A DNA stretch of 33,435 bases from Cyanophora paradoxa CCMP329 (lineage: Eukaryota > Plantae > Glaucophyta). The notes under the pieces were generated by a model. It saw only the letters and a program-made list of their open reading frames with translations. It made no database searches and was not told where the DNA came from. The translations under genes were made by a program, and so were the position numbers. Of the stretch, positions 5,875 to 33,435 are shown one piece after another. The DNA lies in the NCBI GenBank assembly GCA_004431415.1, contig QPMI01000065.1, positions 1 through 33,435 on the forward strand. Direction: 5' to 3'. Positions within the stretch are counted from its first letter, which is position 1. Every line of letters starts with the position of its first letter.

Positions 5875-6000
5875 CCGTCGCCAACCCGACGCGACCCGAT
5901 GCGCGCCGACCGTCGAGCGTGCTGTATAAACCGACTCTAGGCGCCGTCACCGTGGTGGTGACGGTAAACCTTGCGGAGTTGAATCAAGGGTTCGAGTCCC
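5875..6000 (+). repeat. Dispersed repeat copy R1 (TATAAA + CCGTCACC/GGTGACGG hairpin + B-box-like GGTTCGAGTCC)
   Basis: TATAAA 5925-5930; 8-bp stem 5944-5951/5957-5964; GGTTCGAGTCC 5989-5999. Closely similar to 8304-8390. Confidence 0.85.
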
Positions 6001-6007
6001 CGCGGGC

Positions 6008-6123
6008 CCGTCGCCGACCCGACGCGCGCCGAACGTCGAGCGCGCCACCAGAGGCGAGCATAGGCGCCGTCACTCTGACGGTGACGGTAAACCCTGCGGA
6101 GTTGAATCAAGGGTTCGAATCTC
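6008..6123 (+). repeat. Dispersed repeat copy R2 (tandem to R1)
   Basis: taggcgccgtcactctgacggtgacggtaaaccctgcggagttgaatcaagggttcgaatc matches R1; the TATA-containing segment is replaced. Confidence 0.85.
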
Positions 6124-6142
6124 GGCGGGTCCCGTTTGGCCG

Positions 6143-8303: not shown

Positions 8304-8390
8304 GTCGAGCGTGCTGTATAAACCGACTATAGGCGCCGTCACCATGACGGTGACGGTAAACCCTGCGGAGTGAATCGAGGGTCGGATCCC
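8304..8390 (+). repeat. Dispersed repeat copy R3
   Basis: gtcgagcgtgctgtataaaccgactataggcgccgtcacc differs from R1 at one position; hairpin kept; B-box decayed (gggtcggatccc). Confidence 0.85.
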
Positions 8391-8727: not shown

Positions 8728-8762
8728 GGTCACTCGTTGCGCTCGAAAAAAACGCGCGCGGC

Positions 8763-8864
8763 CCGTCGCAACCCCACGCGCGCCGACCGCCGAGCGTGCT
8801 ATGGGATGATCCGATCCGTCACGGGTCGAAGGCCGCGGACGCGTCGCCGTCACCGACGGTGACG
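8763..8864 (+). repeat. Diverged repeat copy R4
   Basis: ccgtcgcaaccccacgcgcgccgaccgccgagcgtgct matches the 5' part of R1; cgccgtcaccgacggtgacg matches the hairpin. Confidence 0.6.
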
Positions 8865-17412: not shown

Positions 17413-17446
17413 GGTGATTTTTCTCTGTTTCCCAGTAGGCCACCCC

Positions 17447-18625
17447 ATGGACGGCCGGAAGGCGGCGATCGCGCTTGCCGTCGCGGCGGGCGCGGCCGCG
17501 GCCATCTACGTGGCGGTGAAGTCGGCGACCCGAGCAGCACCGGAGGGATCCGAGCTTGCGCCAGGCCCCCGCCCGACGGCCGCCACGAGGGCGGCGTCGG
17601 CGGGGGGCGAGCCGATCGACGTGGAGAAGGAGCTCGAAGCGTTCGAACGCGGCCTCGTCGCGGCGCGGGTGGCGCCCTCGCCCAGGCAGGCGCTGGTGGC
17701 GCGGCAGGCGGAGGTGGCAGCGCTGCCGCCCGTGAACTGGGACGCCCTGACGACGGAACTGAACCGGATGCGGGCGTGGCGCTGGCAGGTGCTGAAGGAC
17801 ACCGCGATGATCGCACGCGAAGAAGCGAGACAGAAGAACGTCCAGCGCGCCCGCGAGGGGGTGCTGTACAGCGAGGCGTACGCCGAGTCGGCGCAGTTCG
17901 CCCTGGACTGGGCGCAGGAGAGGTGGCGGGAGACGCTGCAGATGCAGGCGGACACGGAGAGGCGCCTCGCGCTCACGAAGGCCATGGTGGAGCAGGTCAC
18001 GAAGGACACGTCGACGCTCCAGGTCGCGTCGCGGGCGAGCCGGGGCGCGGGGTCGCGCGTCGCGGTCGCCGGCGAGGTGTGGGGGCTGCCGCCGAACCCC
18101 CCCACGGGGCTGCGCGGCGAGGTCGTCTCGCGGGGCTCCCGGTCGAAGAAGGCGGAGGACTTCGTCGCCCCGACCGTGCGGCTCACCTGGAGCGAACCGG
18201 CGTCGGACGGCACGCCGTCGCTGACCCAGGCGTTCAGGGTCTACATCAACGGGCTCCCCGACGTCGCCAAGGACGGGACGCCCCGCCTCGTGGAGCCTGG
18301 GGAGGGCGGGTCCATCGAGGGGATGTACCAGTGGACGGGACCCGCGCCCGTCAGCGGGTTCCAGGACGTGCCGGGGCGGAACTCTTTCTCGGTCTCCGCG
18401 CTCCGCGTGTACTTCAGGGAGCCGACGGCGGAGGAGAAAAAGGGGGACCCCAAGCTGGAGGAGGTGCCGGTCTTCATCGAGGGTCCCGTGAGCGCCTCGA
18501 TCATCGTCGAAGTGCCCGAGCCGCCCTATGTCGAGAAGAAACCCGCCGCGAAGAAAACCGGCGATTTGAAGAAGGTGGACGGCGCCGCAGCCTCAGCGGC
18601 GACGAAGGCGGCGAAGGCGCTGTGA
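17447..18625 (+). CDS. Viral 392 aa protein: N-terminal membrane anchor, helical/coiled region, C-terminal fibronectin type III domain
   Basis: Intact ORF: AAIALAVAAGAAAAIYVAV; PPNPPTGLRG...VRLTWSEPASDG...FRVYING...FSVSA...EGPVS (FN3 pattern). Confidence 0.75.
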   Translation: MDGRKAAIALAVAAGAAAAIYVAVKSATRAAPEGSELAPGPRPTAATRAASAGGEPIDVEKELEAFERGLVAARVAPSPRQALVARQAEVAALPPVNWDALTTELNRMRAWRWQVLKDTAMIAREEARQKNVQRAREGVLYSEAYAESAQFALDWAQERWRETLQMQADTERRLALTKAMVEQVTKDTSTLQVASRASRGAGSRVAVAGEVWGLPPNPPTGLRGEVVSRGSRSKKAEDFVAPTVRLTWSEPASDGTPSLTQAFRVYINGLPDVAKDGTPRLVEPGEGGSIEGMYQWTGPAPVSGFQDVPGRNSFSVSALRVYFREPTAEEKKGDPKLEEVPVFIEGPVSASIIVEVPEPPYVEKKPAAKKTGDLKKVDGAAASAATKAAKAL

Positions 18626-19443
18626 TCGGCGGCGGGCCCGGGAGCGTGTACGGGGGCGGCGGGCCCGGGAGCGGCGCCGACTGTAACGGCGGCTGGATGC
18701 GTTGGGGCAGGGGCGTCATCCATCCATTCCGAATCCGGCGGGGGCATGGGCGTCCCGGGTTGCGATCCCGCCGCGGGATCGGGGGGCACCGGGGCAACGG
18801 GGCGCAGGTCCACTACTCGGGTTGGCGCCTGTGCAAGCGAATCCTGTAGGATCATCTTCTCGCGCACGAAGCTGAGCCCAAGCGCCATGGGATGTCTACT
18901 GCTCAGCGCCACCCTGGTGCTGGGTCCGACGCGACCGGGCCATTTCAAAAGGGCATACCTTGCAGCGGCGTCATACGCGATGTATGCAATGACGTTGCAC
19001 AGAGCAAGAGTGTCTGGAGTCTCGAAAGCCTCGAAGCTCAGGTCGAAGATTCGAAGCATTAGAAGAAATCCATATTCGTCCTCCTCTAGGACCAGTTGCA
19101 GGCCCACATGCGGAAGAGGGGCCCCCAACAGATCAAGGGCGCGGCCGCCCGCGGCGGGGGCCTGAGGGATCATGTTAACCTGAATTCCATCGACACTGTC
19201 CATCTCATCAAGCCGAAACCTATAGTTGATTTCTCGCACGTCGCTGGGGTTCTGAGGGTGCAGTATCTGGATTGGAATAATTGACCTCGATTTTATTCCC
19301 TCCCCAAACGAACGCCATGGCAGCGTCGGGAGCCTGGTCTGGTTGTTTATCCGGTCTCGTAGTGTCAATTCGGCAAATCTGCGTCCTTCCCCCCAGTGCC
19401 ACTTTGACGGGGGCGGGATATCGCGATGGGGCGCCCGTTTCAT
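18526..19443 (-). CDS. Viral hypothetical protein (~305 aa), lower GC than its neighbours, Pro-rich tail
   Basis: ATG 19443 preceded by gaaattatcagagaagctgggtaaag; open frame MKRAPHRDIPPPSKWHWG...; the 3' end overlaps the FN3 gene by ~100 bp. Confidence 0.6.
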   Translation of the reverse strand: MKRAPHRDIPPPSKWHWGEGRRFAELTLRDRINNQTRLPTLPWRSFGEGIKSRSIIPIQILHPQNPSDVREINYRFRLDEMDSVDGIQVNMIPQAPAAGGRALDLLGAPLPHVGLQLVLEEDEYGFLLMLRIFDLSFEAFETPDTLALCNVIAYIAYDAAARYALLKWPGRVGPSTRVALSSRHPMALGLSFVREKMILQDSLAQAPTRVVDLRPVAPVPPDPAAGSQPGTPMPPPDSEWMDDAPAPTHPAAVTVGAAPGPAAPVHAPGPAADHSAFAAFVAAEAAAPSTFFKSPVFFAAGFFST

Positions 19444-19469
19444 CTTTACCCAGCTTCTCTGATAATTTC

Positions 19470-19880
19470 TCACACGGGCGCGAACACGAACGCATCGGGC
19501 TCCTCGGCGGTGGGGAGCCACAGCCCCAGGTCGAGCACCACGCCGCTCGCGAGTCGGCGGAAGACGCGGAGGGCGCGGCCGTCCGCGATGTTCCTGCGCA
19601 TGGCGACGTGCTCGGCGGCGCCGTCGTCCCTGTACTTGGCGTACTTGAGCGCCTCCTCGGTCTCCTGGTTGGCGTACGCGGAGGAGGAGCTCGAGTAGAC
19701 GCTGGCGATGTAGCCGTCCTCGCCGACGTAGAACCCCCGTAGCGTCGGGTGCAGGCGCCGGAACTCGTCGGTGCCGAGGAGGGTCGGCTCGGGGCTGCGG
19801 GTCCGCCGGGGCCACCTTCGCGGCAGCTCGCCGAACACCGTCCACGGGGTGGGTTCGGTCTGAACGCCGGCCTCGGGCAT
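19470..19880 (-). CDS. Viral hypothetical protein (136 aa)
   Basis: Intact ORF with very high GC3; upstream ctattttccccgcgcaccggtaaagcagcaATG. Confidence 0.65.
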   Translation of the reverse strand: MPEAGVQTEPTPWTVFGELPRRWPRRTRSPEPTLLGTDEFRRLHPTLRGFYVGEDGYIASVYSSSSSAYANQETEEALKYAKYRDDGAAEHVAMRRNIADGRALRVFRRLASGVVLDLGLWLPTAEEPDAFVFAPV

Positions 19881-19929
19881 TGCTGCTTTACCGGTGCGCG
19901 GGGAAAATAGTGCGGCGCGCGAATCCGCG

Positions 19930-20264
19930 TCACGGCGCGAAGGGGTCGCGCGAGAACGGGCAGTGGGCCGTGGGGCCCAGGACGCTGCAGGGGATGCGCG
20001 CCGGCTTCAAGGCCTCGGACGCCACGATCCGAAACGCCGGCGCGCTCGAGCCGTCCGAGCCCGATGCGAGGCTCGCGACGGTGTCCAAGGCCACGAACGC
20101 CGGCGAGGTCGCCACGTCCTCGGGGGCGGGGGCCGGTTCGCTCGGGTTGGCGACGGCGGCAACGGGTCGCGCGGTCGGTTCGGCGGGGGTGGGGTGCGCG
20201 ACGCCACCCAGGCCGCCACGGCGGCGAGGGCGGCGAGAACCAGGAGGCCGCGCGCGGAGTCCAT
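19930..20264 (-). CDS. Viral small membrane-anchored protein (~110 aa; one frameshift)
   Basis: MDSARGLLVLAALAAVAAWVA, a Pro-rich linker, then a C-terminal IPCSVLGPTAHCPF in the next frame. Confidence 0.6.
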
Positions 20265-20318
20265 GGTTCCTGTGAATGGGCCAAAAAATAGATGCAACCC
20301 AGTAAGACGCGGGGAGCG

Positions 20319-21412
20319 ATGCCTGTCCTCGACCCCGCCAGGATCGCCCTGCTGGCGAAGAAGGTGGAGCAGGCGAACACGCAGTACAGCAAGAAGGCCG
20401 CCGAGGAGACGCTGATGAGGTACATCGAGAACCGCAGGGCGCTCACCCCGCCGCGGTACCGCTACCGGTACGCGGCGGCGGCGGGCGCGTGTACGACCAG
20501 TACGAGACGATCGACGGGTTCATGAAGCTCGTGGAGAAGCGGATGGGCACCGGGGCGGCGGGTGCCCAGGGCACGGCAGAGCTCCAGGATCTCACGAGGC
20601 TTCCGGCGGCGGCGTCGGTGGAGGACCGCCTGAAGATGCTCGAAGGGGTGCGGAAGCACAAGATCGAGCTCAAGGAGGCGGGGGCCACCCCGGAGGAGGT
20701 GGGGATACTCGACTACATGTTCCGCGTGCAGAACCCCGGGGCGGTCCTGCCCCCCAACGCGCCGAAGATGCCGGTCCCCGGGACCCTGGGCACGCTGGCC
20801 GGCGCCATGACGATGCTCCTGGGCCTGGGAGGGGGGGGTCAGGCGGCGGTGGCGGGCGCGGCCGCGGTCGGCGACGCGGTGGGCCAGATCATGGGCTCGC
20901 CGCAGTTCTGGAGGTCCGTGAACCAGCTCGTGGGCTCGAATAAGCTCATGCCCGAGGACCTCCACCGGCTGCTCGAGTCGCCCGGCTTCCTCCGCGCCAT
21001 GGAAACGGTCCGGGATGCCCGGCGCGAGGAGACCGAGGGCAAGCGCATCAGCTCCGCGATCGTGCAGCAGGCGCTGTCGATGATGACCACCGAGCCGGCG
21101 TGGGCCCGCAACCGCCGCTGGGCCGGCGCTCGGGGCGCCGCGGGCCCGGGGGACGCGCCGGTCGCGCCGGTCGCGCCGGCGGTCCGGCCGGTCCCGCGGC
21201 CCCTCCGTGATCACGCCGCGACCCTACATGACCGTCTAGCGCCGCCGAAGTTTTTGTTTAGGTACTTTGAGGACCCCGCACTTCCGCCGCCGCGCAAGAA
21301 CCCGCTCTCGTCCGCGAAGAGGCCGGGGTTGATTAGCCACGCAAAACACTACTGGTACAGGAGGCGGGTACCGCTCGCGTTCTGCCGCATGACGTTGAAG
21401 CCGACGGCGTAG
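20319..21412 (+). CDS. Viral hypothetical protein (~350 aa) with a central Gly/Ala hydrophobic segment; one frameshift near 20490
   Basis: MPVLDPARIALLAKKVEQAN... joined to YDQYETIDGFMKLVEKRM...GTLGTLAGAMTMLLGLGGGGQAAVAGAAAVGDAVG. The 3' end overlaps the MCP end and is uncertain. Confidence 0.65.
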
Positions 21413-22559
21413 ACGAGGAGGTCGAGGTCGGCGTCGGTGCCGGGCGACGCGAAGGTGAAGTTCATGAGGATCTGGTCGACGGTGCCGAGGTTGAGCGAGC
21501 CGGTGGGGCGGTGCGTGTCGGCGTCGAGACAGAAGGGCAGGCAGAAGATGTCGCGGTCGGGGACGCGACCGTGGACCTCGCGGGGGGTCACCACCTTGTA
21601 GTAGGTGGGCGGCAGCGGCGGGACGCGCTCGTTGCCGCGGAGGGTCAGCGAGAGCGTCTTGAACCGCTCGGGGATGGCGTTGTAGAGGGTGGCGGGGTCG
21701 GCGTTGTTGTCCGGCGTGGGGTCGTCGTGCTCGTAGTCGAAGAGGCGGCCGTTGGTGGCGCGCTCGAACTCGCGGAAGACGAAGAGGAGCTCCTTGCAGG
21801 GGCCCGTGAGCCTGATCTCGGCCGCGAAGGTCTCGGAGCCCTTGGGGACGCGGAACTCCTGGGTCTGCCAGGTCTCGACGAGGCGCTCGAAGGGGCGGTT
21901 GACCTGGGTCTTCTCGGGCTCGTCGAGGTAGATGAAGTTGCAGAGGAGGTAGGCGTCGGTGATCTGGCCGCTGAGGACGCGGTCGAGGGCGGGGATGGGC
22001 TCCAGGGCGTCGTCCGTCTGCAGCATGACGAGGTGCTTGAGGGGGCGGAAGGTGACGGCGACCTTGATGTCGGGGCTGCCCATCACGGGGTGCGCCGTCT
22101 GCGGCAGGCGCGTCCACGTGGGGAGCGGGACGATGAACCTCTGCGTCTCGTTGGAGACGCGGCGGAGGTAGCCGGGCGTCCAGTCCCAGTCGCCGATGAG
22201 GGGCGCGAGCGGCTTGTTGATCTCGTCGACGGAGAGCGCCGACTGGAGGTCGATGTGCTCGGGGCGGATCTCCTGCACGACCGCGCCGCCGATGGAGATC
22301 ACGACCTTCTCCCACATCGCGAGCCCCAGCTTGTTCGTCCAGTGCCAGTAGTTCACGCCGTCCGAGGGGGTCTGCACGAGGGGGCCGACCTCGAGGACGA
22401 GGTACACGCGGTGGAGGAGGTCGCACTGGCGCGGGACGGTCGTCCAGGCCGTGCCGCCGTACGCGGCGCCCATGGGGAAGGAGACGCGGACGGGCTGCGA
22501 GACGAAGGCGCTGTGGCGCTTGGTGCCGCCCGTCCAGAACGTGATCTCGGGGTTGAACG
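21349..22559 (-). CDS. NCLDV-type double-jelly-roll major capsid protein (divergent), missing roughly the first 15-20 residues
   Basis: Open frame starts upstream of the tracked Met: FNPEITFWTGGTKRHSAF...VPRQCDLLHRVYL...ISIGGAVVQ...YLLCNFIYLDEPEK...PCKELLFVFR...LRGNER...FCLPFCL....RPTGSLNLGTVD...VYAVGFNVMR. This is colinear with the Vp54-family motifs NPQITFF / GDL / IGG / YIYLD / PVKEL / PSGSLNFSRID / YAxNYNVLR. Confidence 0.92.
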
Positions 22560-22563
22560 AGGG

Positions 22564-22752
22564 TTCGTCTTCTCACACCACTCGTGGTACAGGTCGAGCA
22601 GGTCCTCCTTTCGGATATACCACTTCTTGTAAGTGCGGTCGTCCCGTGTAATCGTGGCATCCAGCTCGACCTTCGTAAGGAGCTGTTTCGCATGTCGCAG
22701 ACGGCCCCGGACGGACCTCGACGGGCCGAAAACGGCGCGACCTTTTGGACAT
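22564..22752 (-). pseudogene. 5' remnant of a gene with a winged-helix-like segment (RFX / D5 C-terminal type), abutting the MCP
   Basis: DRTYKKWYIRKEDLLDLYHEWCEKTNP resembles the IxxxxLxxxYxxWC helix pattern. Codons are less GC3-biased than the MCP. The ATG at 22752 needs one frameshift. Confidence 0.45.
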
Positions 22753-22986
22753 CCCGCTAGTTCGCGAGCTTTAACAATGGATGGAATTTGAATTTTGAAC
22801 ACGGCCGTGTCACGGCGGCTATCAGCCGGCTGAGTTCGAGTTCGAGCTGGCTAGACCAAATTCTATATCCCCCCAAGCCATCTCCCCCCCCTTCCAAGCC
22901 ACGGCCAGCTGCAGCTAGATTGCGGCCAGCCACGGACTTGCGCGGGAAAAGCAAAAGCGCTTATAGCTTAGCGTTCGGCGATCGAG

Positions 22987-24790
22987 ATGCCGCTCTCTGT
23001 GCTGTCTGCCAAGGTCGGCTCAGCGTTCGGTTCCATTAGAGCGTGGCTGGGCGGCGCCAGCGATGGCAGGCCGCGGCACGGCCAGATTGGCGGCAGCACC
23101 TGCGGCAGCCAGGACGACCTCGGCGAGGACGTGAATCCAGACGACTTTGGCGACGCAGCTTTGAGCGAGCAAGTCGTTCAGCCTGCGCATGCAGCGCCAG
23201 CTGCGCATGCGACGGCCGCGGTCGCGCTGGCGCCTCCCGCGGCGGAGCCGGCGGGCGGGAGCGACTCCCCACAAGTCTCGCCAGTACGCTCAGAGCTCGA
23301 GCAGAGCCCCGGCAGCGGCTGCTGTGAGACGCCAGGGACGCCTTTGGGGGGGGGTACGCCTGTACAGCCGTGTACGCCGCCTGTCGCAGCTGCCTCATCA
23401 GCGACCCCCGTGTACACGCCTGATCGCCCGCGTCGCAAGCGGGTAGTAGCTGCGCCCTCGCAATCGCAGCCTTCGCATGATCAGCCGGCCACGCCTCCAC
23501 GCACGCAGCCGCCGGCGGCAGCGGCCTCGCCAGCGACCCCGTGGACATGCCTAAGCGCGTGAGTCGCAAGCGGGCAGCGGCGGCGACCTCCCAGCCTTCG
23601 CCCGCGGCGGCACCGAGCGAGCAATATGAGGATCCCTTCGTTGCCATGGAGCGGTATATGGACGATCCCTCTGTCGCGCCGTCGCCTGCCAGCTCAGCCG
23701 CGAAGAAGCCAGCCCCGAAGAAGCCCGCCACGTCCACCAAGCAGCAGTGCAAGCGGCGCAAGTGCGATGTCGAGATGACGGGCGAGGAGGAAGATCGATT
23801 CACCCCCTGGGACAAGCCCGGGCGGCACCGCTTTCGCATCGAGGAGGAGGACGCCGCACTCTATCGGAGGCTCACCGGCTGCAAGCGGGTTTCCGATGCG
23901 GTTCGCATGGCGTCCAAGCTCCTTGAAGCGATCGAGTACCTTCAGCAGCGTGTGCGCGCGCCGTTTCACGCCGCCGTGCGCTTCGCCCGCAGCTTGCCTC
24001 GCTGATTCGGGCCGCAGGATGTCCTAGACAAGGGTCTAACTGGCGCGGAGCTCGCCAATCAACTGAAGGCGAAAGTCGACGTGTTCCTCCGTGCACCGGC
24101 GCAGCGTGAGGAGCTCCAACAGAAGTGCAGCTCCCTGGAGCGGGAGCTCCCTGATCTGCGGTGGGCCAACAGGGAGAAGCAGCGGCAGATCGCTCAACGG
24201 GAGGAGAAGATCGCTCAGCTGGAGAAGGAGATGATGCAGCTCAACGCCAGTCTGGTGAGCCCGCCGGCCGCCGCGCCGCCCGCGCCGCCGGCGCCCGCAA
24301 TGCGCTGCTGACGGCGGTCCCTCCGGCGCCCGCAGAGAGCGACTCGGGTCAAAAACCTCGAAGAGGAGTGCGAGGAGCTGCAGAACCAGAACGCTGCGCT
24401 GCAGACGAAGGTGGATGACTTGGAAAACAAGGTCCGCGATTGCCCACACGCGTGCGTGCGCCCGCTGGCGCGTAACGCGGCGCGGCGCAGGTCTCAAGGA
24501 TGAAGAGGAATTGGGACTTGGAGTTGGAGCGTGAGGCGAAGGTGTGGCGGAAGGAGGAGCGCATGTACATAAAGGAGGTGGAGGAGCTGGAGGCCGTTAT
24601 CGAGTATCTCTACATGAGGGACGTGCTCATGCGGGAACCCCGGGGGCCTAGGTCGCAGGGTGGGTCGCCGCGGTCCAGCAGCTACACGCTGCTGTGCCGC
24701 CGGAGACGTCGCCTTTCGAGGCGCCCGCCATCGGGCGCTAGCCCCGGCCCGCTCGCTTCGTCCTGCATAGCTAGAGCTCTCATCGGATGA
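22987..24790 (+). CDS. Spliced hypothetical protein: disordered Pro/Ser N-terminus, basic NLS-like patches, long C-terminal coiled coil
   Basis: ORFs 22987-23562 and 23541-24005, plus exons EELQQKCSSLERE...IAQLEKEMMQLNASL, NLEEECEELQNQNAALQTKVDDLENK and ELEREAKVWRKEERMY, separated by gt...gcag introns. Confidence 0.65.
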
Positions 24791-25072: not shown

Positions 25073-26223
25073 CTCGGGATGAGTCAAGGCCTCGCACCTG
25101 GGGCTGGCAATCCATGCACTGCGGCAAGCAGCCGCTGCCCCACCGACCTCGTCTCGCAGAAGCGGGTCACGGAGATGAAGGAAGACCGCGTGAAGCGCCG
25201 CGGGCGCTCTCGTGGCATGCCGGGCCGGGCCGGGCGTATGCGTACCCGGTTGGCCAGCGGAGGAAACTCGGCTGACTGAGCGGCTCGCGCTTTCGACAAC
25301 GTGGCACTGTGGCACTGTAGTACACCTGGCGAGGCGCACGCCGCGACAACGATTCGGCGAGGCGCACGCCCTCGCCCGCGAACTTGGAACATACGCACGC
25401 CTGCCCTGGATCGCGGACCGAGCCTCGGAGACTTCCGCCCTCTCCGAGGCTCATGGCTGAAGCTGCGATAGCATGGTGCCGGCTGGCTGAGGCCGCCCGT
25501 GCCGGAGCAGCTGCAGCCGGGGCCAAGTGGCTGGCCGGCGCCTTAAGCGCGCGGCTGCACTGCGAGCGGGGAGCTGGGCTCGCTGTCGGCGGCAATCTTA
25601 TCCGCTCTCAAGGTTTCGCAAGGCTGCGAGCGCGCGGCGACCCCGGTATCGCGTTCGCAATTTTTGATCTGCCAGGGAATCTGCACTCCGAGGCTTGCGA
25701 TTGAAGCACGGCAGCCTCGTATCTTGATTAGAACTTTTTATTCAAGATGTAGAGGCGTCACACGGCGTTATTTAGTGCCCTGCACAAAGCCCCGCGATGG
25801 GCCCATTTAACCCGTCATACCATATGACTCATCATACGCCTATACACTACGTTACAGCTAGTCTTCTGCTGACTTTTGGCCCTTCCAAATTGGGCCCATC
25901 GCCCAGGAGCTGGGAGACATCGAAAAAAGCTTAGAGAACCTTTTTAAAGCACTATATAAGGCCTCCTATGCAGCTGCAGGGTCGGGGGAGGCCTTGTATG
26001 GCGCGAAAATAGGCTCCCGAGGCCCCCGGACTGCCAGAGTGTCCCGGAGGCCCCCGACTGTCCCGCCAGGCGCCCCGCCCTGTCAGCCCGCCCCGCCAGC
26101 CCGCCCGCCACTCTCGGTAGTCACTGAGTGCCACGGTGCCACGGTGCCACGGTGCGCGCACGATAGCAGAATAACTAGTAAATCTGTCGTATTCAAGCCA
26201 GGTGCAGACTGCAGCTGGTGACT

Positions 26224-27320
26224 CTAGCTGCAGACATCGTCCGGCCGCGAGACGAGGACGCCGTCGCCGGCAGGGCGGCGACCGGCGGGGCGGGGGCGGG
26301 GGCCGGCGGGCGGGGCGGGGGCCGGCGGGCGGGGCGGGCGGGCGGGGCGGGGCGGGGCGGGGGCGGGCGGCGGGCGGGGCGGGGCGGGCGGGGCGGGCGG
26401 GGCGGGGCGGGGCGGGCGGGGCGGGGCGGGCGGGGCGGGGCGGGGCGGGGCGGGGCGGGGCCGGCGGGCGGGGGCGGGGCCGGCGGGGCGGGGCGGGGCC
26501 GGCGGGGCGGGGGCGGCTAACGGCGGGGCGGGGCGGCTAACGGCGCTACGCTTCGTCGTCGGCATCGTCCGGCCGCGAGACGAGCACGCCGTCGCCGCGA
26601 CGCAGGCGGCGGCGCTTGCACCGAGCAGCAGCAGCAGCCCGTCCGCCTCCGCCGCCGCCTCCGCCGCCTCCGCCGCCGCCGCCGCCGCCGCCTGCTGCTG
26701 CCGGATGCGCACCCGCTGGAAGTGCTCCGCGCACTTGAAGAGATTGTCGCCGAAATGCTCCATCTGCCCCGCCCGCCGCTGCAAGGCCGTCACGTTGTCA
26801 TAGAGAGGCTTGAAGGCCGCCTCCTCGTAGAGCCCGAGGGGTCCTGCCCGCAGAAGCGCGCCGTGCTGCGGTGCTTGCGGATCTCCGACCGCAGGTTAAT
26901 GGCCTCGAGGAGGTTGTTGTGCGCCAGCGCGACCTCGAACTGCTCGTACAGCTGCTCGTGCTCGCGCATCCACGCGCGCGCGTACTCCAGCAACTGCTGA
27001 GCTCGGCCAGCTTGTATGGCCTCACCGAGTCGCGCTCTATTGCGAGGTTGACCTCCAAAGCTGCCTGGTGGCGCCGCCTGATCTCATCCTCCTCCTCGAG
27101 CGCGCGCTCCTCGTCCGCCTTCATGCGCGCCCTGCGCTCGGCGCGCTGCCGCTGGTCCATCGCTCTCCGAGTCGCTGCTGTTGATCTCGATGACAGACGA
27201 AGTCATTGGGCGATTGCACGGCGCGTTGATGGTCTCCTCCTGGTCCTCCTCCTCGGACACGTAGTCAGCGGGCATATGCTTCGCTCCACAGCTAACATAG
27301 CTACACTGTCGATGCGACAT
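26224..27320 (-). CDS. Hypothetical helical protein (acidic patch, coiled coil, poly-Ala, Pro-rich tail); frameshifted
   Basis: Stitched: DYVSEEEDQEE; RMKADEERALEEEDEIRRRH; LLEYARAWMREHEQLYEQFEVALAHNNLLEAINL; FKPLYDNVTALQRRAGQMEHFGDNLFKCAEHF. Divergent from the transposase gene. Confidence 0.55.
26283..26540 (+). repeat. (GGGGC/GGGC)n G-rich tract bracketed by 35-bp direct repeats
   Basis: About 250 bp of almost pure G/C; catcgtccggccgcgagacgag(g/c)acgccgtcgccg at 26235-26269 and 26563-26597. Confidence 0.85.
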
Positions 27321-28232
27321 AGCTAACGCTTGAGGCTGCTTCAGGCCCACCAGCTGCAGGGCGTTCAGCTGGAGTTGGACGTTCAGCAGTTTGCGTACCC
27401 AGTCTGGGCATGCTCCCCTTGCTTAGCGCGTCATACCCATATCGACGAGCGAGCATCGCGGCCGGCAAGGACCGCGCGGGTGGACCAGCCGCTTCGCCTA
27501 AGGTAGCTATGCATCGCAATTGCGCATTATCGCGCATGCTGGCTCGCCTGCTGCTCTTCGGCGCCTAACTGTCGCGGATGTGTATGCTTGCTCGCGGCGC
27601 TCGGAGCTGCCGCTTCCGCAGATGGCAGGGGAGGTACACGCGATCTTTTTTTCCGAGTTTTGAACCCGCCGCGCGATGCAGCGACCCATCGCGCCCCGTC
27701 CCGCGGCCCAGCCCGCGCCCCAAACGTTTCCAGCGCCCGCAGCAGTCGTTTTAGAGATGGCGGACGCGTCGGTCGCGTACCAGGCGCTTATGCGGATCAT
27801 CGCAGTGCTCACCACAGCCGAAACGCCCACCTGGAACTGGAGGCGCGCGGCATTGCGTCTCCATTGTATCCGCATAGCTTAGCTTGCACGGCGGCGCTTC
27901 AAGAGGCCACCGCAGTGGCTGTGTTCCTCCAGTGCATCCTGCAGAGCCCTCCAGCTTCGCCACCCGGGTCGCCATCGGCTCCAGCGAGCCCGCAATCGCC
28001 TCAGATTAGCCCAGAGCAGCAGCAGCAGCGCGGTCGTCGCGCGTTCGGCGCCGACGTGGTATGCCGCTCATTCAAATTCGATGTCATGACTTGACTTGCC
28101 CGCGCTTACGAGTGTATGCTCTCTGCCCGGCCGCGAGCAGACGAATGCAGTTCTTAATGAGGCGCCGAGCCCGGCGCCGCGGCCGGCCCCGGCCCCGGCA
28201 CCGCCCCGAAACGCGCTCGCGGCAAGGAAGAT

Positions 28233-31192
28233 GTGCCGCCTGAGGAGCGGATCGTCCGCAAGGCGACGCTCAAAGCGCGCGACGAGCGCATCGCAGTGCT
28301 TGAGGCGGAGAACAAGAAGCTTAGGGAGGAGCACCAGTCGAAGCGCGCCAAGGTCCCGCGGACTTCGGCACAGCGTGCAGCGACCATCTCGCGCATAGCT
28401 AGGCAGGTCCCTGGGAAGGATGCTCGGATACGTCCAGGCAGCGGCGCACGCGGTTCCTCCGCATGCTGCTCTCGACGATTCTAAACGCTGCGAGTCCGGA
28501 CATCCAGATCCGCCTCCCCATGTTTAAAAAGAACTTCGCGAGGTACAAGGCGGGGCGGCGCGCGCGCAGGCATATGCATGCTTATCCAGGGCGCCCCAGG
28601 AACAAAGGAGAGGAGGAGGGCGCCTATCAGAAGAGGAGGGAGGCGCTGGAGGCGGAGGCACGCCGCCTCGTGAGCATCATCGGGCACACGCAGTGCGCGT
28701 TATTATACATAAAAAGAGCTACCGAGAATCGTACTTTAATAGGCTACAAAATCGTTGGAGAAGAGCACCTTTCTGAACCACCGTCCGCAGGCCCAACGAG
28801 CCCTGGAAACGAGCAAATCGGGTCAGCTGCAAGTGAAGAAGGCGATGAGCATCGCCTGCAGGAAGCTGCGGGACACCTTCCCGACTGCGAGATTCTAGAG
28901 TGGAAGGACCGCCACTGCATCTCGGACGTGCGCCCTTTCTCGAATGTTTTAACCCCCATCCCGTTCTAAACCGACCCGGGGCAGGCGACGTACTTTGAGT
29001 TCACGAAGCTCCTCAAGAAGGCCCTGAAGAAGCACTTCGTGGGCTGCGAGCTTCCTCCCGTCGAAGCACTGCATCACGAAGCTACGGGGCAAGGTCAACG
29101 ATGACCTCGAGAAGGCGCGGCGCGCGCGCGCGGGGCGGGGGTGAGGGACGAGGCTCACCGAGCGGTGCAGATCGTGCAGATCGTCGAAACAGCGGCGGGC
29201 GTCGGCGACGAGGAGAACAAGGGCAAGCCGGGCGTCATGCTCGAGCTCTTTGTGCTCCGTCGAGCGCAGCGCCGGCGGCGGGCGGAGAGCGGCAGCGCCG
29301 GCGGCGGGCGGAGAGGCGGCAGCGCCGCCGCCCGCAGAGCTGTCACGCGACGCCCGCCCTGTCGGCCCTCATCAGCGCTTTCGTCCCGCTGCACAAGCAC
29401 AGGGGGAAGAAGATCAGACCTCGAGTCCGCCTGGCGGGCGACGGGACGATCGCGTTCCGCGGAAGAGCGTCTCCACGACCGACGGCATGACTGCATCGTG
29501 GCAATCGTCGACGGCTACTACGTCATCGAGGAGGACGGGACGCAGGCGTACCACCCGCTGAAGGGCGTTCAGAGCTGCTACGCCCTCCTGCCCCTAATGC
29601 TCTTCGGCGGTAGCGACAGCGAGGAGAACCTGCGCCCACGCATCAAGCCCCTCGCCGACATGGTCGAGTACCTGAACGAGAACCCGCTCACCCTGATCCC
29701 CGGTACGAGCACGACAAGCCGTCGAGGTCGAATTCTTGGTGACGGCGACTACAAGTTCCTCGCGTCCTCCTCGGCTTCGACCTGTGCCCGCACTGCGATC
29801 TGTCCACCGACGCGGGTCAGTTCGCCGAGTCACACGCGCTGAGATTCGGCATGGGGCTCACGTTACTGCAGGTCCGAGTGCTCGGCGGTCGAAGTCGTGC
29901 GCGCAGCAGGCCGCGGATCGGGACGGCCTCCCTCCAGCCAGCGAACAGAGAATCCGCACCCCGAGCACGACGCCAACGCCCTCCTGCAGCCGCTCCGAAC
30001 AGCATGCTGCCCGTCGCTGCCGTCGAGGTGAGAAGCCCGCGACACCTCGCCTCAGCGGACGCCAACGCGCACCTCAGGTCCGGCTCGACGACGCCCTGCA
30101 CGGCATCAAGAGCTGGGTGGCCGGGTTCTTCGTCTACTTCTTCCTCGCCCTCGCCTGTGGTGCCTCGAGGACCAGCAGAAGCGCATCGAAGACCTGCAGC
30201 GTCATCTTCGCGATAAATACGCGCGGAACATCAAGTTCGAGAAGACCGAGAACGGGGCCACCTACAAGTTCTTCCAGAGATCTCCGCCAACACCGCCAAG
30301 AAGATCCTGGAGGACCCCGAGGCGCCCGACACCTCTTCAGCATCTGCTTCGGCGACAGTAAGGAGAGCTGGAGCGAGAAGACGAGGGCATGCACGAGATT
30401 GGCAGCTCCGCCAGATCATCTACCAGTACGAGCGGAACATGAAGCCCGACGAGGAGGCGCGGCAGCAAGTTATCGAGGCCGTCGCCGAGCTCCAGGCCTG
30501 ATGGAGACACACTTCCCGTTATGGAAGATCTTCACACGCTACATGCACTCGACGCTTGCGCACCTCGCGTTCTGGGCGCGCGTCGACAACACGAACGCGC
30601 CGGCCGTTGGAGCTGCGAGGTCATCGAGTCCTACATGGGCCTCCTTCGGCGCCTGCGACACACCGTCACGTCTCTCGGTGGCGGGTGGAACAAGGACCTC
30701 GACATGCTCAAGCAGATCATGACGCACCAGCGGCGGCGCCTGGCGCTGTGGATGCGGAACATGACGGAGGCGAGCGCCGGCGGGAAGGACGCTGCCACGC
30801 CGAGTACGACGCGCCCGTCGCCGCCAAGGCCTGGCCAGATGGCCCTTCATCCCCCGACCTGCGGCCCGTCCCCACCGTCAGCGGCTATGCAGGGCGAAGG
30901 GGCGGCGGCGGCGCCGCCGGGGCGAGGAGGTGGCAGCGGTGCCCCTGCTGCGGACGAGGAGGAGATCGACGAGGATATTGAGCTGCAGGAGGGGGATCCG
31001 GTGCCGGAGGACGAGGTGCCCGAGGAGAGCGGGGACGAGAGGAGGAGGAGGAGGAGACCGCCGAGTACGACGCCGAGCAGAGGAGGAGGCGGAGGAGGAG
31101 ATGAGGCGGAGGATGAGGGCGCCAACATGCTCGATTTCGATGATAGGGCCCTAGCAGAGGTTCTAGCAGACGATCTAGCGGAGGGGGAATAG
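28233..31192 (+). CDS. RAG1/Transib-like DDE transposase; intron-containing, frameshifted, acidic C-terminal tail
   Basis: D1 in VRLAGDGT (29440); LLPLMLFGGSDSEENLRPRIKPL (RAG1 [23 protein letters not shown]); D2 in GDYKFL (29747); CPHC (29785-29796); DALH (30090-30101, RAG1 IDALH); YMHSTLAH (RAG1 YFHKTLAH); GRWSCEVIESYMGLLRRLR with E at 30626 (RAG1 GAWASEGNESGNKLFRRFR). Introns at 28928-28984, 29252-29337, 29816-29871 and 30028-30077. Confidence 0.85.
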
Positions 31193-31223
31193 ACGAAATG
31201 GATTTGACCAGACATAGCGCACT

Positions 31224-31228
31224 TGTAA
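31224..31228 (+). promoter_or_regulatory. TGTAA poly(A)-signal-like motif between the convergent genes
   Basis: About 30 nt after the transposase stop. The same motif lies ~27 nt after the 12310 stop and ~15 nt after the 17100 stop. UGUAA is the known chlorophyte poly(A) signal. Confidence 0.4.
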
Positions 31229-31229
31229 C

Positions 31230-33203
31230 CTAGATAGTGCGATTCTCAGTAGCAGCTTCACGACTTTGCCCTCTTGCGCGCCGCCCCGCGCCGCGAGCTG
31301 TGCCGCGCGATCCTTCCTGCTGCAGGATTAGGCGAGCAAGTAGCCGAGCGGGGGCGAGGGGAGGGGCGCACTTGGGACCGAGCGGATGCGGCGGGGCAGG
31401 TAGGGCGCAGCGGCCGGTGGGGCAGCAGCAGCAGGGCGACAGGGCGGCGACGGCGGGCGGGGCGGGCGGGGCGGCGGCGGCGGCCGGCAGGGCGGCGGCG
31501 GCGGGGGCCGCGGGCGGCGACGGCGGGGGCGGCAGGGCGGCGGCGGCGGGGCCGGCAGGGCGGCGGCGGCAGGTTCTGAAGGGGCTGCTTCGGGACAGCG
31601 GCGCCTTGGCGACGGTGTTGGCGCCGGCGCGGCACCGGCGCGGGCGCTTCACGGGACAGCCGCGAGGGGCCGCGAGGCTGGCGATGCGCTCGCCGTCGGG
31701 CCGTACTCGTAGCTCGGAAGCTCGAGCGTGACGTGCCCACCTTTCCTGCCCGAGCGCTTCGTGCCACGATCCGACCGGGACCTGCCGCGCCAAGGAGCAG
31801 AGCTTCGTAAGCGAGCGGCGCGGCGAGGGCGGGCCGGGCGCACGCTCGTCGAACTGGACGACGTCATGGGAGCCCTGTGGCGCGGCACGATTAAGCGCCG
31901 TACGCCTTCTCGACGGTGACGGTCTGCATCTCGCTGTGCTTCCGGATCGCCTTCCGTCCGCTCCCGCTTGCAGACGCGCTTGGACGCTTGCGCCACGCCG
32001 GAGGGACCGAGAACAGCTGCAAAGAGGTCGGAAAAAAGACAGCGAGCGGGAAAAAGGAAGCGGCTTCCACCAGCAGCGGTCTCGCGGTCCGGAAGCTCGA
32101 TAACGAGCGATTCGCCGCCGCAGCTTGTCAACCGGGATCGGCTGGCCCGTCTTCGGGTCGATGGGCGTGGCGACGTGCGCGACCTGCGCCACGATGTTCT
32201 CCTGCGATGCGCACGTTAGAGGATAGAAAAAGAACTTCGAACGAGTCATAAGAGCCGCAGACAACATTGCCGGCCCGGCCACCGGGATCTGACGTTGAAC
32301 AGCTCGTCCGGTCTTCCGGCGCTTGAGGGCGTTCGCGGCGGCGTCCTGAAGGTAGCCAATCGCCTCCACGCGCTCTCCGGCCTCGACAGCGCCGGAGAAG
32401 CACGCCATCTTCTCTTCGCCACTCGCTGAGCCTCGCGTTGAAGGCGAGGCGACGTCAACTGGAAGGAGCCGTCGCCCGGGAACGTCATGATTTGCTTACA
32501 GACGTAGATGTGGGGATCGCGTGGTTGAGGGCTTTGTACTCGTCCGCGCCACCACCTTCGCGGGTGCGTGAACCTGCGCGCACGGGCATCGGACGCTGGA
32601 ACGGGCGCGGGCGCGGCGGCGGACCGTCACGTTCGAGTAGTAGATGAGGTGGTTTGCGATGCCACGGCTGCCTGCTCCCCGTCTGCCTTGATGATCACGC
32701 TGCCGAGCCGCAGTCCTTCACATCGGAGTCCTCCGGGCGCACGAAGCGCCGAAGGATGACGCCGTTGACGGAGTAGTTGAAGTCGCCGCGCTTCGCCTTC
32801 GTCTGTGTTGGGAACTCGCCCTCGACTCGCGCCAAAATCGTTTCACCTGGGCGCGGGAAATGGAAGGCTTCGGCGAACGACGCTGAGTTCTGGACACAGC
32901 TGGGTGTCTGAGCTAACTGAACAGATGACGAAGTCGCCAAGGCGAACGTGGTAGGCGCGGCCGCTGGTGTCCAGGCAGCGGACCGTTGCCGCGGGGTGCT
33001 CGCCCTTGAGGATGTCGAGGTCAGGGAGCTTGGGCTCCTTCGCCTTGCGCGCCTGCTGAGTGATCTTGTTGACACGCTTCATGTTGCCCTTGCCGGCCCA
33101 CGAGCTGCTGCTGTCGGGTCGCTTGCCGTGCCAGCGTGCGACGTCGGGCCTCGTCGAAGCCGTCATCCCAGAGGCTGGGTTCCTTTCGCTTTGACTGCTT
33201 CAT
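31230..33203 (-). CDS. BAH-domain-containing protein, convergent with the transposase; spliced, frameshifted
   Basis: Stitched 32960-32450: YHVRLGDFVICSV...ETILARVEGEF...VILRRFVRPED...NVHAPAKVVA-DEYKAL...PHIYVCKQIMTF..DGSF. This follows the BAH pattern (xGDxV / IARI / RPEE / GKCxV..EY / FxC..YD). The C-terminal part is unrecognised and Pro/Ala-rich. Confidence 0.6.
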
Positions 33204-33435
33204 GCACGCGGCGTGCAGGAATGCTCGCGCTCGGGCGTGCGCGATGGCGGGAAGCTAGCTAGTCCGGCCTAGCCGAGGGAAGCTGACTAGCAAGCCGGCC
33301 TGCTGACCGTTACTGTGACCGTTGTGGCCGCGTGTGTACGCCACTGTGTACGAGGCCAAGTTCGAGCTCAAGTTTGCGCTGGGCTAATTTCATTGGGCGA
33401 AGAAGTTAACAATGGGCGGGGCGTGACGCAAACTC

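Follow-up and report, generated by a model that had tools for sequence, protein, structure and literature searches.

A young transposon of Cyanophora paradoxa combines a RAG1/Transib-fold transposase with a convergent, probably BAH-like partner gene

The window studied here, contig QPMI01000065.1 of the glaucophyte Cyanophora paradoxa CCMP329 in its full length of 33,435 nucleotides, carries toward its right end a RAG1/Transib-fold transposase gene and a convergent second gene (hereafter, the partner), both of which are parts of a young mobile element. The reading we favor, with about even confidence, is that of a Transib-like stand-alone transposase accompanied by a degenerate-BAH nuclear accessory protein, which would affect targeting or silencing, and by an antisense RNA that would act as a brake. 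To our knowledge, transposases like RAG1, the enzyme that rearranges antibody genes, are rare outside animals, and the literature searched yielded no report of one in glaucophytes, of such a Cyanophora element, or of BAH passengers. Iyer et al. 2014 (PNAS) reportedly linked BAM/BAH domains to Plavaka/CACTA-type transposases, which would lower the novelty. New here are the copy-by-copy linkage of the two genes, modest statistical support for a BAH domain, the loss of its cage, and an antisense RNA. The pair comprises the following.

27757..31217, plus strand: RAG1/Transib-fold DDE transposase gene encoding about 950 aa, with an uncertain start (EukProt models P0032/P0030 as its counterparts)
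31218..31257: gap of 40 bp between the two stop codons (mapped gene models)
31258..33203, minus strand: partner gene of about 585 aa, spliced (models P0009/P0007; RNA joints)

Mapping of the models from other copies (P0031/P0023 and P0009) places the transposase stop at 31215-31217 (plus strand) and the partner stop at 31260-31258 (minus strand), which bears out the convergent arrangement with stops about 40 bp apart described in the original prediction; splicing of both genes is seen in RNA contigs. There are partner models at 23 loci, spread over 22 contigs, and these differ at 0-8 of 426 residues. Every one of the 9 transposase loci retrieved has a partner model at the next gene number, or two numbers away in tig00000249. 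Because the transposase search was length-limited, nine is a minimum, and a partner locus for which no transposase was retrieved does not argue for its absence. DNA contigs show a flat and very high depth over the whole stretch, and the neighbors differ between copies, with a capsid gene here and a ketoacyl synthase in model P0033. Many near-identical copies in different flanks are the mark of a recently active transposon. The 23 near-identical loci, the linkage at every transposase locus retrieved, and the high, flat depth therefore identify the partner as part of a young mobile element rather than a host neighbor. The pair stays linked and convergent across copies, and neither of the two outcomes anticipated as fatal to the pairing, a single-copy host BAH gene or transposase copies lacking it, was encountered. 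The 40-bp gap is not unusual in itself, since end-to-end genes with shared untranslated regions are common in the gene-dense C. paradoxa genome (PMC6704402). The interval first proposed, 28233-33203, did locate the pair, but transposase models start at 27757 and multi-copy DNA continues beyond both of its ends. At one other locus (tig00020848, models P0021/P0022), the C-terminal half of the partner is partly duplicated in tandem.

Broken frames in the window are long-read assembly errors. Comparison with Illumina contigs over 27440-33435 shows 7 substitutions plus 91 small indels, and each of the 12 indels listed consists of letters missing from the window; because the indels are absent from the Illumina contigs and from other copies, pseudogene decay is ruled out. 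The organism's Illumina contigs and this region have only 57% of 31-mers in common. Frameshift-aware alignment of the window with sister copies revealed only one- or two-base losses, and the window's own frameshifts are also present in models g22158 and g22160 of tig00000249. Sister-copy EukProt models P0009 (partner) and P0032/P0030 (transposase) stand in for the window genes, and the searches reported below used window pieces and these sister-copy models in place of a joined, spliced model of the window itself. Stop-free window pieces matched nothing in Pfam. A protein search with one such piece of the minus-strand gene brought up EukProt models of C. paradoxa (tig000...) and nothing else.

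The transposase gene displays the following features.

28543..28599, plus strand: sense GT-AG intron, spliced in RNA run X15 and absent from DNA runs
29428..29448, plus strand: RLAGDGT, first catalytic Asp at its inferred position
29744..29796, plus strand: GDYKFL, which holds the second catalytic Asp, and CPHC at 29785, which supplies the C(2)C zinc ligands, a motif class as in PMC12730594
30087..30495, plus strand: DDALHG and a helical ZnH2 domain, part of which resembles the RAG2-contacting alpha11-alpha12 of RAG1 (fold alignment)
30540..30631, plus strand: YMHSTLAH, which supplies the H(4)H zinc ligands, and RWSCEVIES, which holds the catalytic Glu (motif location)
30950..31214, plus strand: acidic C-terminal tail, 52% D/E over 90 aa (composition)

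Several lines of evidence confirm the RAG1/Transib fold and, with it, the RAG1-like character originally assigned to this protein. ESM features gave 0.92-0.93 to RAG1 clusters, with 9 of 10 family matches in agreement; the top six entries in the VIA structure ranking were BbRAG1L, RAG1, and HzTransib, the next standing at 6.6; Foldseek placed mouse RAG at rank 1 (E 0.23); and the RAG1 ZnH2 cluster ranked first in the Atlas for the ZnH2 region (TM 0.62 by target). The sole Pfam match on the piece carrying YMHSTLAH and RWSCEVIES was PF12940 RAG1 (E 0.042), and the CMCT zinc motifs C(2)C and H(3-4)H lie after the second D and before the final E. We take the RLAGDGT Asp to be the equivalent of RAG1 D600. 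The position of RAG1 E662 is apparently Gly, and no RING/CCGHC tail was seen. Sequence searches with the transposase found nothing relevant in PDB, no named CMCT lineage, and no Pfam family passing threshold (DUF1280 only, at E 0.16); word and tblastn searches detected no relatives, and no related loci were found in viral and prokaryotic contigs.

The partner is spliced through five minus-strand RNA joints (31316-31407, 31763-31842, 32016-32071, 32201-32262, and 32571-32623). Its layout comprises a basic N-terminus, a BAH-like domain, a middle part (aa 255-465), and a Pro/Ala tail ending in a basic motif. As the original prediction stated, it has neither kelch repeats nor a PHD finger by Pfam or motif count: there are three scattered GG, no CxxC, and no Trp after residue 36. 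Partner RNA contigs (32623-33435) extend 0.9-1.9 kb beyond the right end of the window; therefore, some transcripts begin in flanking DNA. Model P0033, at another locus, fuses the partner with a host ketoacyl synthase gene. The BAH question concerns one segment.

32465..32953, minus strand: probable degenerate BAH domain, aa ~85-232 (profile and pairwise alignments; cage positions I124/R154/V156)

Library searches did not detect this domain. The whole partner or its pieces had no Pfam match to BAH PF01426 at E values up to 10, PDB sequence searches returned nothing relevant, and ESM features gave no match. Among 1.84 billion representatives, including this proteome, only Cyanophora copies and a bacterial PPC-repeat protein came up. 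The latter was rejected as a relative, its E value of 7e-7 being summed over six weak repeats and repeat-inflated, and P0020, a 54-aa peptide that fell into the partner's cluster, is unrelated to it. The single-sequence fold model (pLDDT 35) is too low in confidence for meaningful structure searches. A blank profile search was the result that the original prediction had named as speaking against a BAH assignment, and for the libraries that is literally what was obtained.

Direct comparison with verified BAH domains told more. The reference genes were taken from metagenomes by a generic BAH motif and then confirmed by Pfam; they form a narrow set. A plant-only end-to-end profile allowing two insertions scored the partner at z 2.6-3.1, a value reached by 3-15 of 1000 shuffles and 1-13 of 719 decoys; with a divergent algal BAH, joined to the profile after its match had been seen, z was 3.5-4.1 (1-2 of 1000 shuffles and 0 of 706 natural decoys), and 2.4-3.5 with the search motif masked. 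By hhalign, P was 0.021 for the BAH-like half of the partner versus 0.89 for the other half. Three methods (hmmsearch, hhalign, and pairwise alignment) arrive at the same register, pairing GDFV with GDCV, ARVE with ARVE, and RPEDS with RPEES, and running gap-free to YVCK/FFCR over the last 40 residues, with five motifs in the right order. Overall, the end-to-end likeness is above chance at p ~0.001-0.02, and BAH homology appears likely, if some way from certain. The motif series originally noticed thus stands as to order and as to better-than-chance likeness to real BAH domains; it lies below every library threshold, and its cage is lost.

Every library search was blank, local HMMER with the BAH profile gave ~0 bits, and the alignment requires two insertions of 13-20 aa. 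These points would fit an orphan accessory protein encoded by the element, with some other beta-rich fold and BAH motifs by chance resemblance. The ordered motifs, the gap-free stretch recovered by three methods, and the p values just given run counter to this alternative, which we hold to be doubtful, if a serious contender.

What a BAH fold would do in the partner is constrained by its cage. The aromatic cage of SHL consists of Y41, W63, and Y65 (PMC6013494), and these align to I124, R154, and V156 of the partner; because the cage is not kept, methyl-lysine reading of the usual kind is unlikely, and a chromatin reader parallel to the RAG2 PHD finger, as first envisaged, finds no backing here. 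Cage-independent BAH binding exists, as in AtORC1b (PMC6013494), and by analogy would be possible for the partner. The two genes resemble the RAG1-RAG2 pair in layout; the partner itself is not RAG2 and is probably BAH-like.

The fixed tail-to-tail linkage across copies and the BAH-like signal might also be taken to mean that the partner is a RAG2 stand-in, binding the transposase through the alpha11-alpha12-like helices to form a two-subunit enzyme that BAH steers to marked chromatin. The better alignment of the transposase model, over more residues, to BbRAG1L/RAG1 (149) than to HzTransib (138) would agree with this. However, the cage residues are lost, RAG2-less Subgroup I and bacterial Transibs also retain alpha11-alpha12 (PMC9435367), the same element carries other open reading frames (ORFs), and end-to-end genes are, as said, common in this genome. 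Nor do the ESM, Foldseek, and VIA matches separate RAG1L from other CMCT lineages, few of which have structures. We therefore regard a RAG2 stand-in as unlikely. The broader proposal, of a glaucophyte RAG1-side transposase bound by an independently recruited, nucleosome-tethering BAH subunit and equipped with an antisense brake, is equally unlikely; it would amount to a second, convergent emergence of a two-protein, chromatin-guided RAG-type recombinase.

In DNA run X13, depth over 32325-33339 is ~1.7x that of the remainder (621 versus 373), and a loose end lies at 32308. Additional shortened copies retain nothing but the right end and the partner's BAH-like half (aa 1-285). Such copies would suit a partner carried as mere cargo, a host BAH gene fragment that was captured and has no role in transposition, in the style of Pack-CACTA, as would the CACAG-type motif with short repeats just upstream of the partner (33304-33348) and the youth of the copies, too recent for selection to be visible. 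This explanation is very unlikely, given that no host parent gene was found among the 1.84 billion proteins, that the 585-aa partner ORF is intact, spliced, and expressed, with basic termini, and that its sequence has strayed so far from any BAH as to imply a long stay in mobile DNA.

Our preferred reading includes a further component, an RNA that runs against the transposase gene.

29298..30840, minus strand: spliced, non-coding antisense RNA across the core of the transposase (RNA joints; splice sites)

Nine joints across 29348-30727 were found in two RNA runs and in neither of two DNA runs. Each of the nine introns (52-75 nt) has GT-AG ends when read on the minus strand and interrupts the transposase reading frame, and the spliced product contains 4-8 stops in each frame. 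A coding gene was rejected on the basis of these stops and of intron lengths that are mostly not multiples of three; minus-strand GT-AG joints together with stops in every frame thus define a non-coding antisense transcript over the catalytic core. Two of these minus-strand introns overlap introns predicted for the sense strand (29817-29872 and 30028-30077). Antisense contigs have depths of 797 and 723 versus 155 and 4 for the sense 5' part, contig depth being a rough guide only. Transcription may start near 30840 or read through from the partner. C. paradoxa has RNA interference and many antisense small RNAs (PMC3700990).

The element extends beyond the pair, as the following features indicate.

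22772..22790, plus strand: candidate left end, TAA followed by a CA-starting terminus at 22775 (inferred; first TAA beyond the capsid gene start at 22693)
22987..24790, plus strand: additional broken ORF(s), presumably part of the element (ORF calls)
26200..27275, minus strand: further ORF, coiled-coil-like, no Pfam match, divergent from the transposase (5' part on the same high-depth DNA contig)
33310..33435: subterminal region on the right; the element's true end falls a little beyond the window, at ~33444-33450 (high-depth DNA contig past 33435)

High-depth DNA contigs extend 282 nt to the left of 27440, into another ORF, and a 141-nt contig extends 15 nt beyond 33435 in both DNA runs. With at least two more ORFs and about twice the length, the element exceeds the two-component transposon originally proposed. 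CMCT elements usually start with CA, the class having 5'-CA..TG-3' termini and target site duplications (TSDs) of 2-5 bp. The last seven bases of the window match bases 10-16 of the candidate left end in inverted orientation at six of seven positions, a match expected in ~2% of cases by chance over the offsets allowed, and this would put the right end near 33444 and the element length at ~10.7 kb before indel correction. Terminal inverted repeats (TIRs) like recombination signal sequences (RSSs), starting with CAC, were not found at both ends: the single near-end heptamer (33342-33348) sits inside the element and is unpaired. We rejected CACTGTG at 33342 as an RSS-like right end, since DNA contigs pass through it and it has no partner heptamer. 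The stretch 33304-33348, inside the element and upstream of the partner, reads on the minus strand as a CACAGTG heptamer followed by two ACGGTCA repeats, possibly a relic end of an older CACTA-like piece. An AT-rich 10-mer occurs in direct orientation near both ends (22771-22780 and 33406-33415); this 10-bp repeat is disfavored as a TSD, multi-copy DNA continuing past 33415.

To the left, a nucleocytoplasmic large DNA virus-type major capsid gene (21349-22693, minus strand; Pfam E 4e-20) is adjoined by intron-poor ORFs (17413-22693), and the element seems to have landed immediately upstream of this endogenous virus-like gene. Elsewhere, small ORFs are interspersed with three to four copies of a dispersed 40-130 bp repeat (5885-6135, 8304-8382, and 8755-8800). 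One RNA contig joins 27021-27048 to 28062 with non-canonical ends, and a second RNA run begins with loose letters at 28064; a deletion copy and a template switch are candidate explanations.

In the mechanism we favor, the element would be a young cut-and-paste DNA transposon with at least 23 loci, whose transposase would act alone as a dimer, as Transib does, cleaving at the element ends, leaving a hairpin on the flank, and inserting at TAA with a 3-bp duplication. Candidate targets of the partner's degenerate BAH fold are the nucleosome surface, histone in its unmodified form, DNA, and a protein of host chromatin, and such binding, without methyl-lysine reading, might bias target choice or shield the element from silencing; the partner would not serve, as the RAG2 kelch propeller does, as a structural cofactor. 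The antisense RNA would damp transposase output through transcriptional interference or as a double-stranded RNA trigger for host RNA interference. Accessory chromatin genes have precedents in the CMCT clade, namely, TET/JBP in fungi (PMC12730594) and SET/methylase genes in red-algal Plavaka (10.1101/2025.02.11.637652).

The element is young, expressed, and resident in a culturable alga, which makes direct testing feasible. RAG1-type helices without RAG2 bear on how RAG1 ancestors gained partner subunits and chromatin guidance and on the place of RAG1 within the CMCT clade. If true, a BAH-type accessory gene would be a new chromatin passenger of DNA transposons beside PHD, TET/JBP, SET, Myb/SANT, and VANC, and transposon self-control has a concrete candidate in the spliced antisense RNA.

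Among known systems, RAGL/ProtoRAG elements (BbeRAGL; AanRAGL of Aureococcus, PMC9435367; RAGL-A, PMC10629977) share with the Cyanophora element a RAG1-fold core, DDE and C2H2 zinc motifs, a long ZnH2, and recent activity; BbeRAGL also has a convergent second gene, and AanRAGL likewise resides in a unicellular alga. In contrast to RAGL, the Cyanophora element has intron-containing genes, extra ORFs, and a length of ~11 kb, a probable 3-bp TAA rather than a 5-bp TSD (from the candidate left end), and a transposase with an acidic tail, an apparent Gly for E662, and no visible CCGHC motif. It is not a RAGL member, because two defining features fail, the RAG2-like kelch/PHD gene and the CAC-starting RSS-like TIRs; "RAG-like transposon" in the strict sense of the original prediction therefore does not apply. 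Transib (HzTransib; Subgroup I) is likewise a RAG1-related single transposase without RAG2L, and Subgroup I keeps the alpha11-alpha12 region; unlike this single gene with CAC TIRs and a 5-bp TSD, the Cyanophora element is multi-gene, with no CAC termini found. Within the CMCT clade (EnSpm/CACTA, Mirage, Chapaev/Chapaev3, Plavaka, ESTA, and Lanisha; PMC12730594), the transposase matches no named lineage by sequence, and the literature searched describes no BAH accessory gene. With BAH domains (the H3K27me3 readers SHL/EBS; cage-less forms such as Sir3 or the AtORC1b mode), the partner shares the order GDxV, ARVE, RPE(E/D)S, then a strand-helix YxxL and Y/FxC(K/R), but differs in having I/R/V for the SHL cage, two insertions, no adjoining PHD, and scores below library thresholds. 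Taken by analogy, the element most likely resembles Transib/RAGL in catalysis and other CMCT elements in its chromatin-related passengers.

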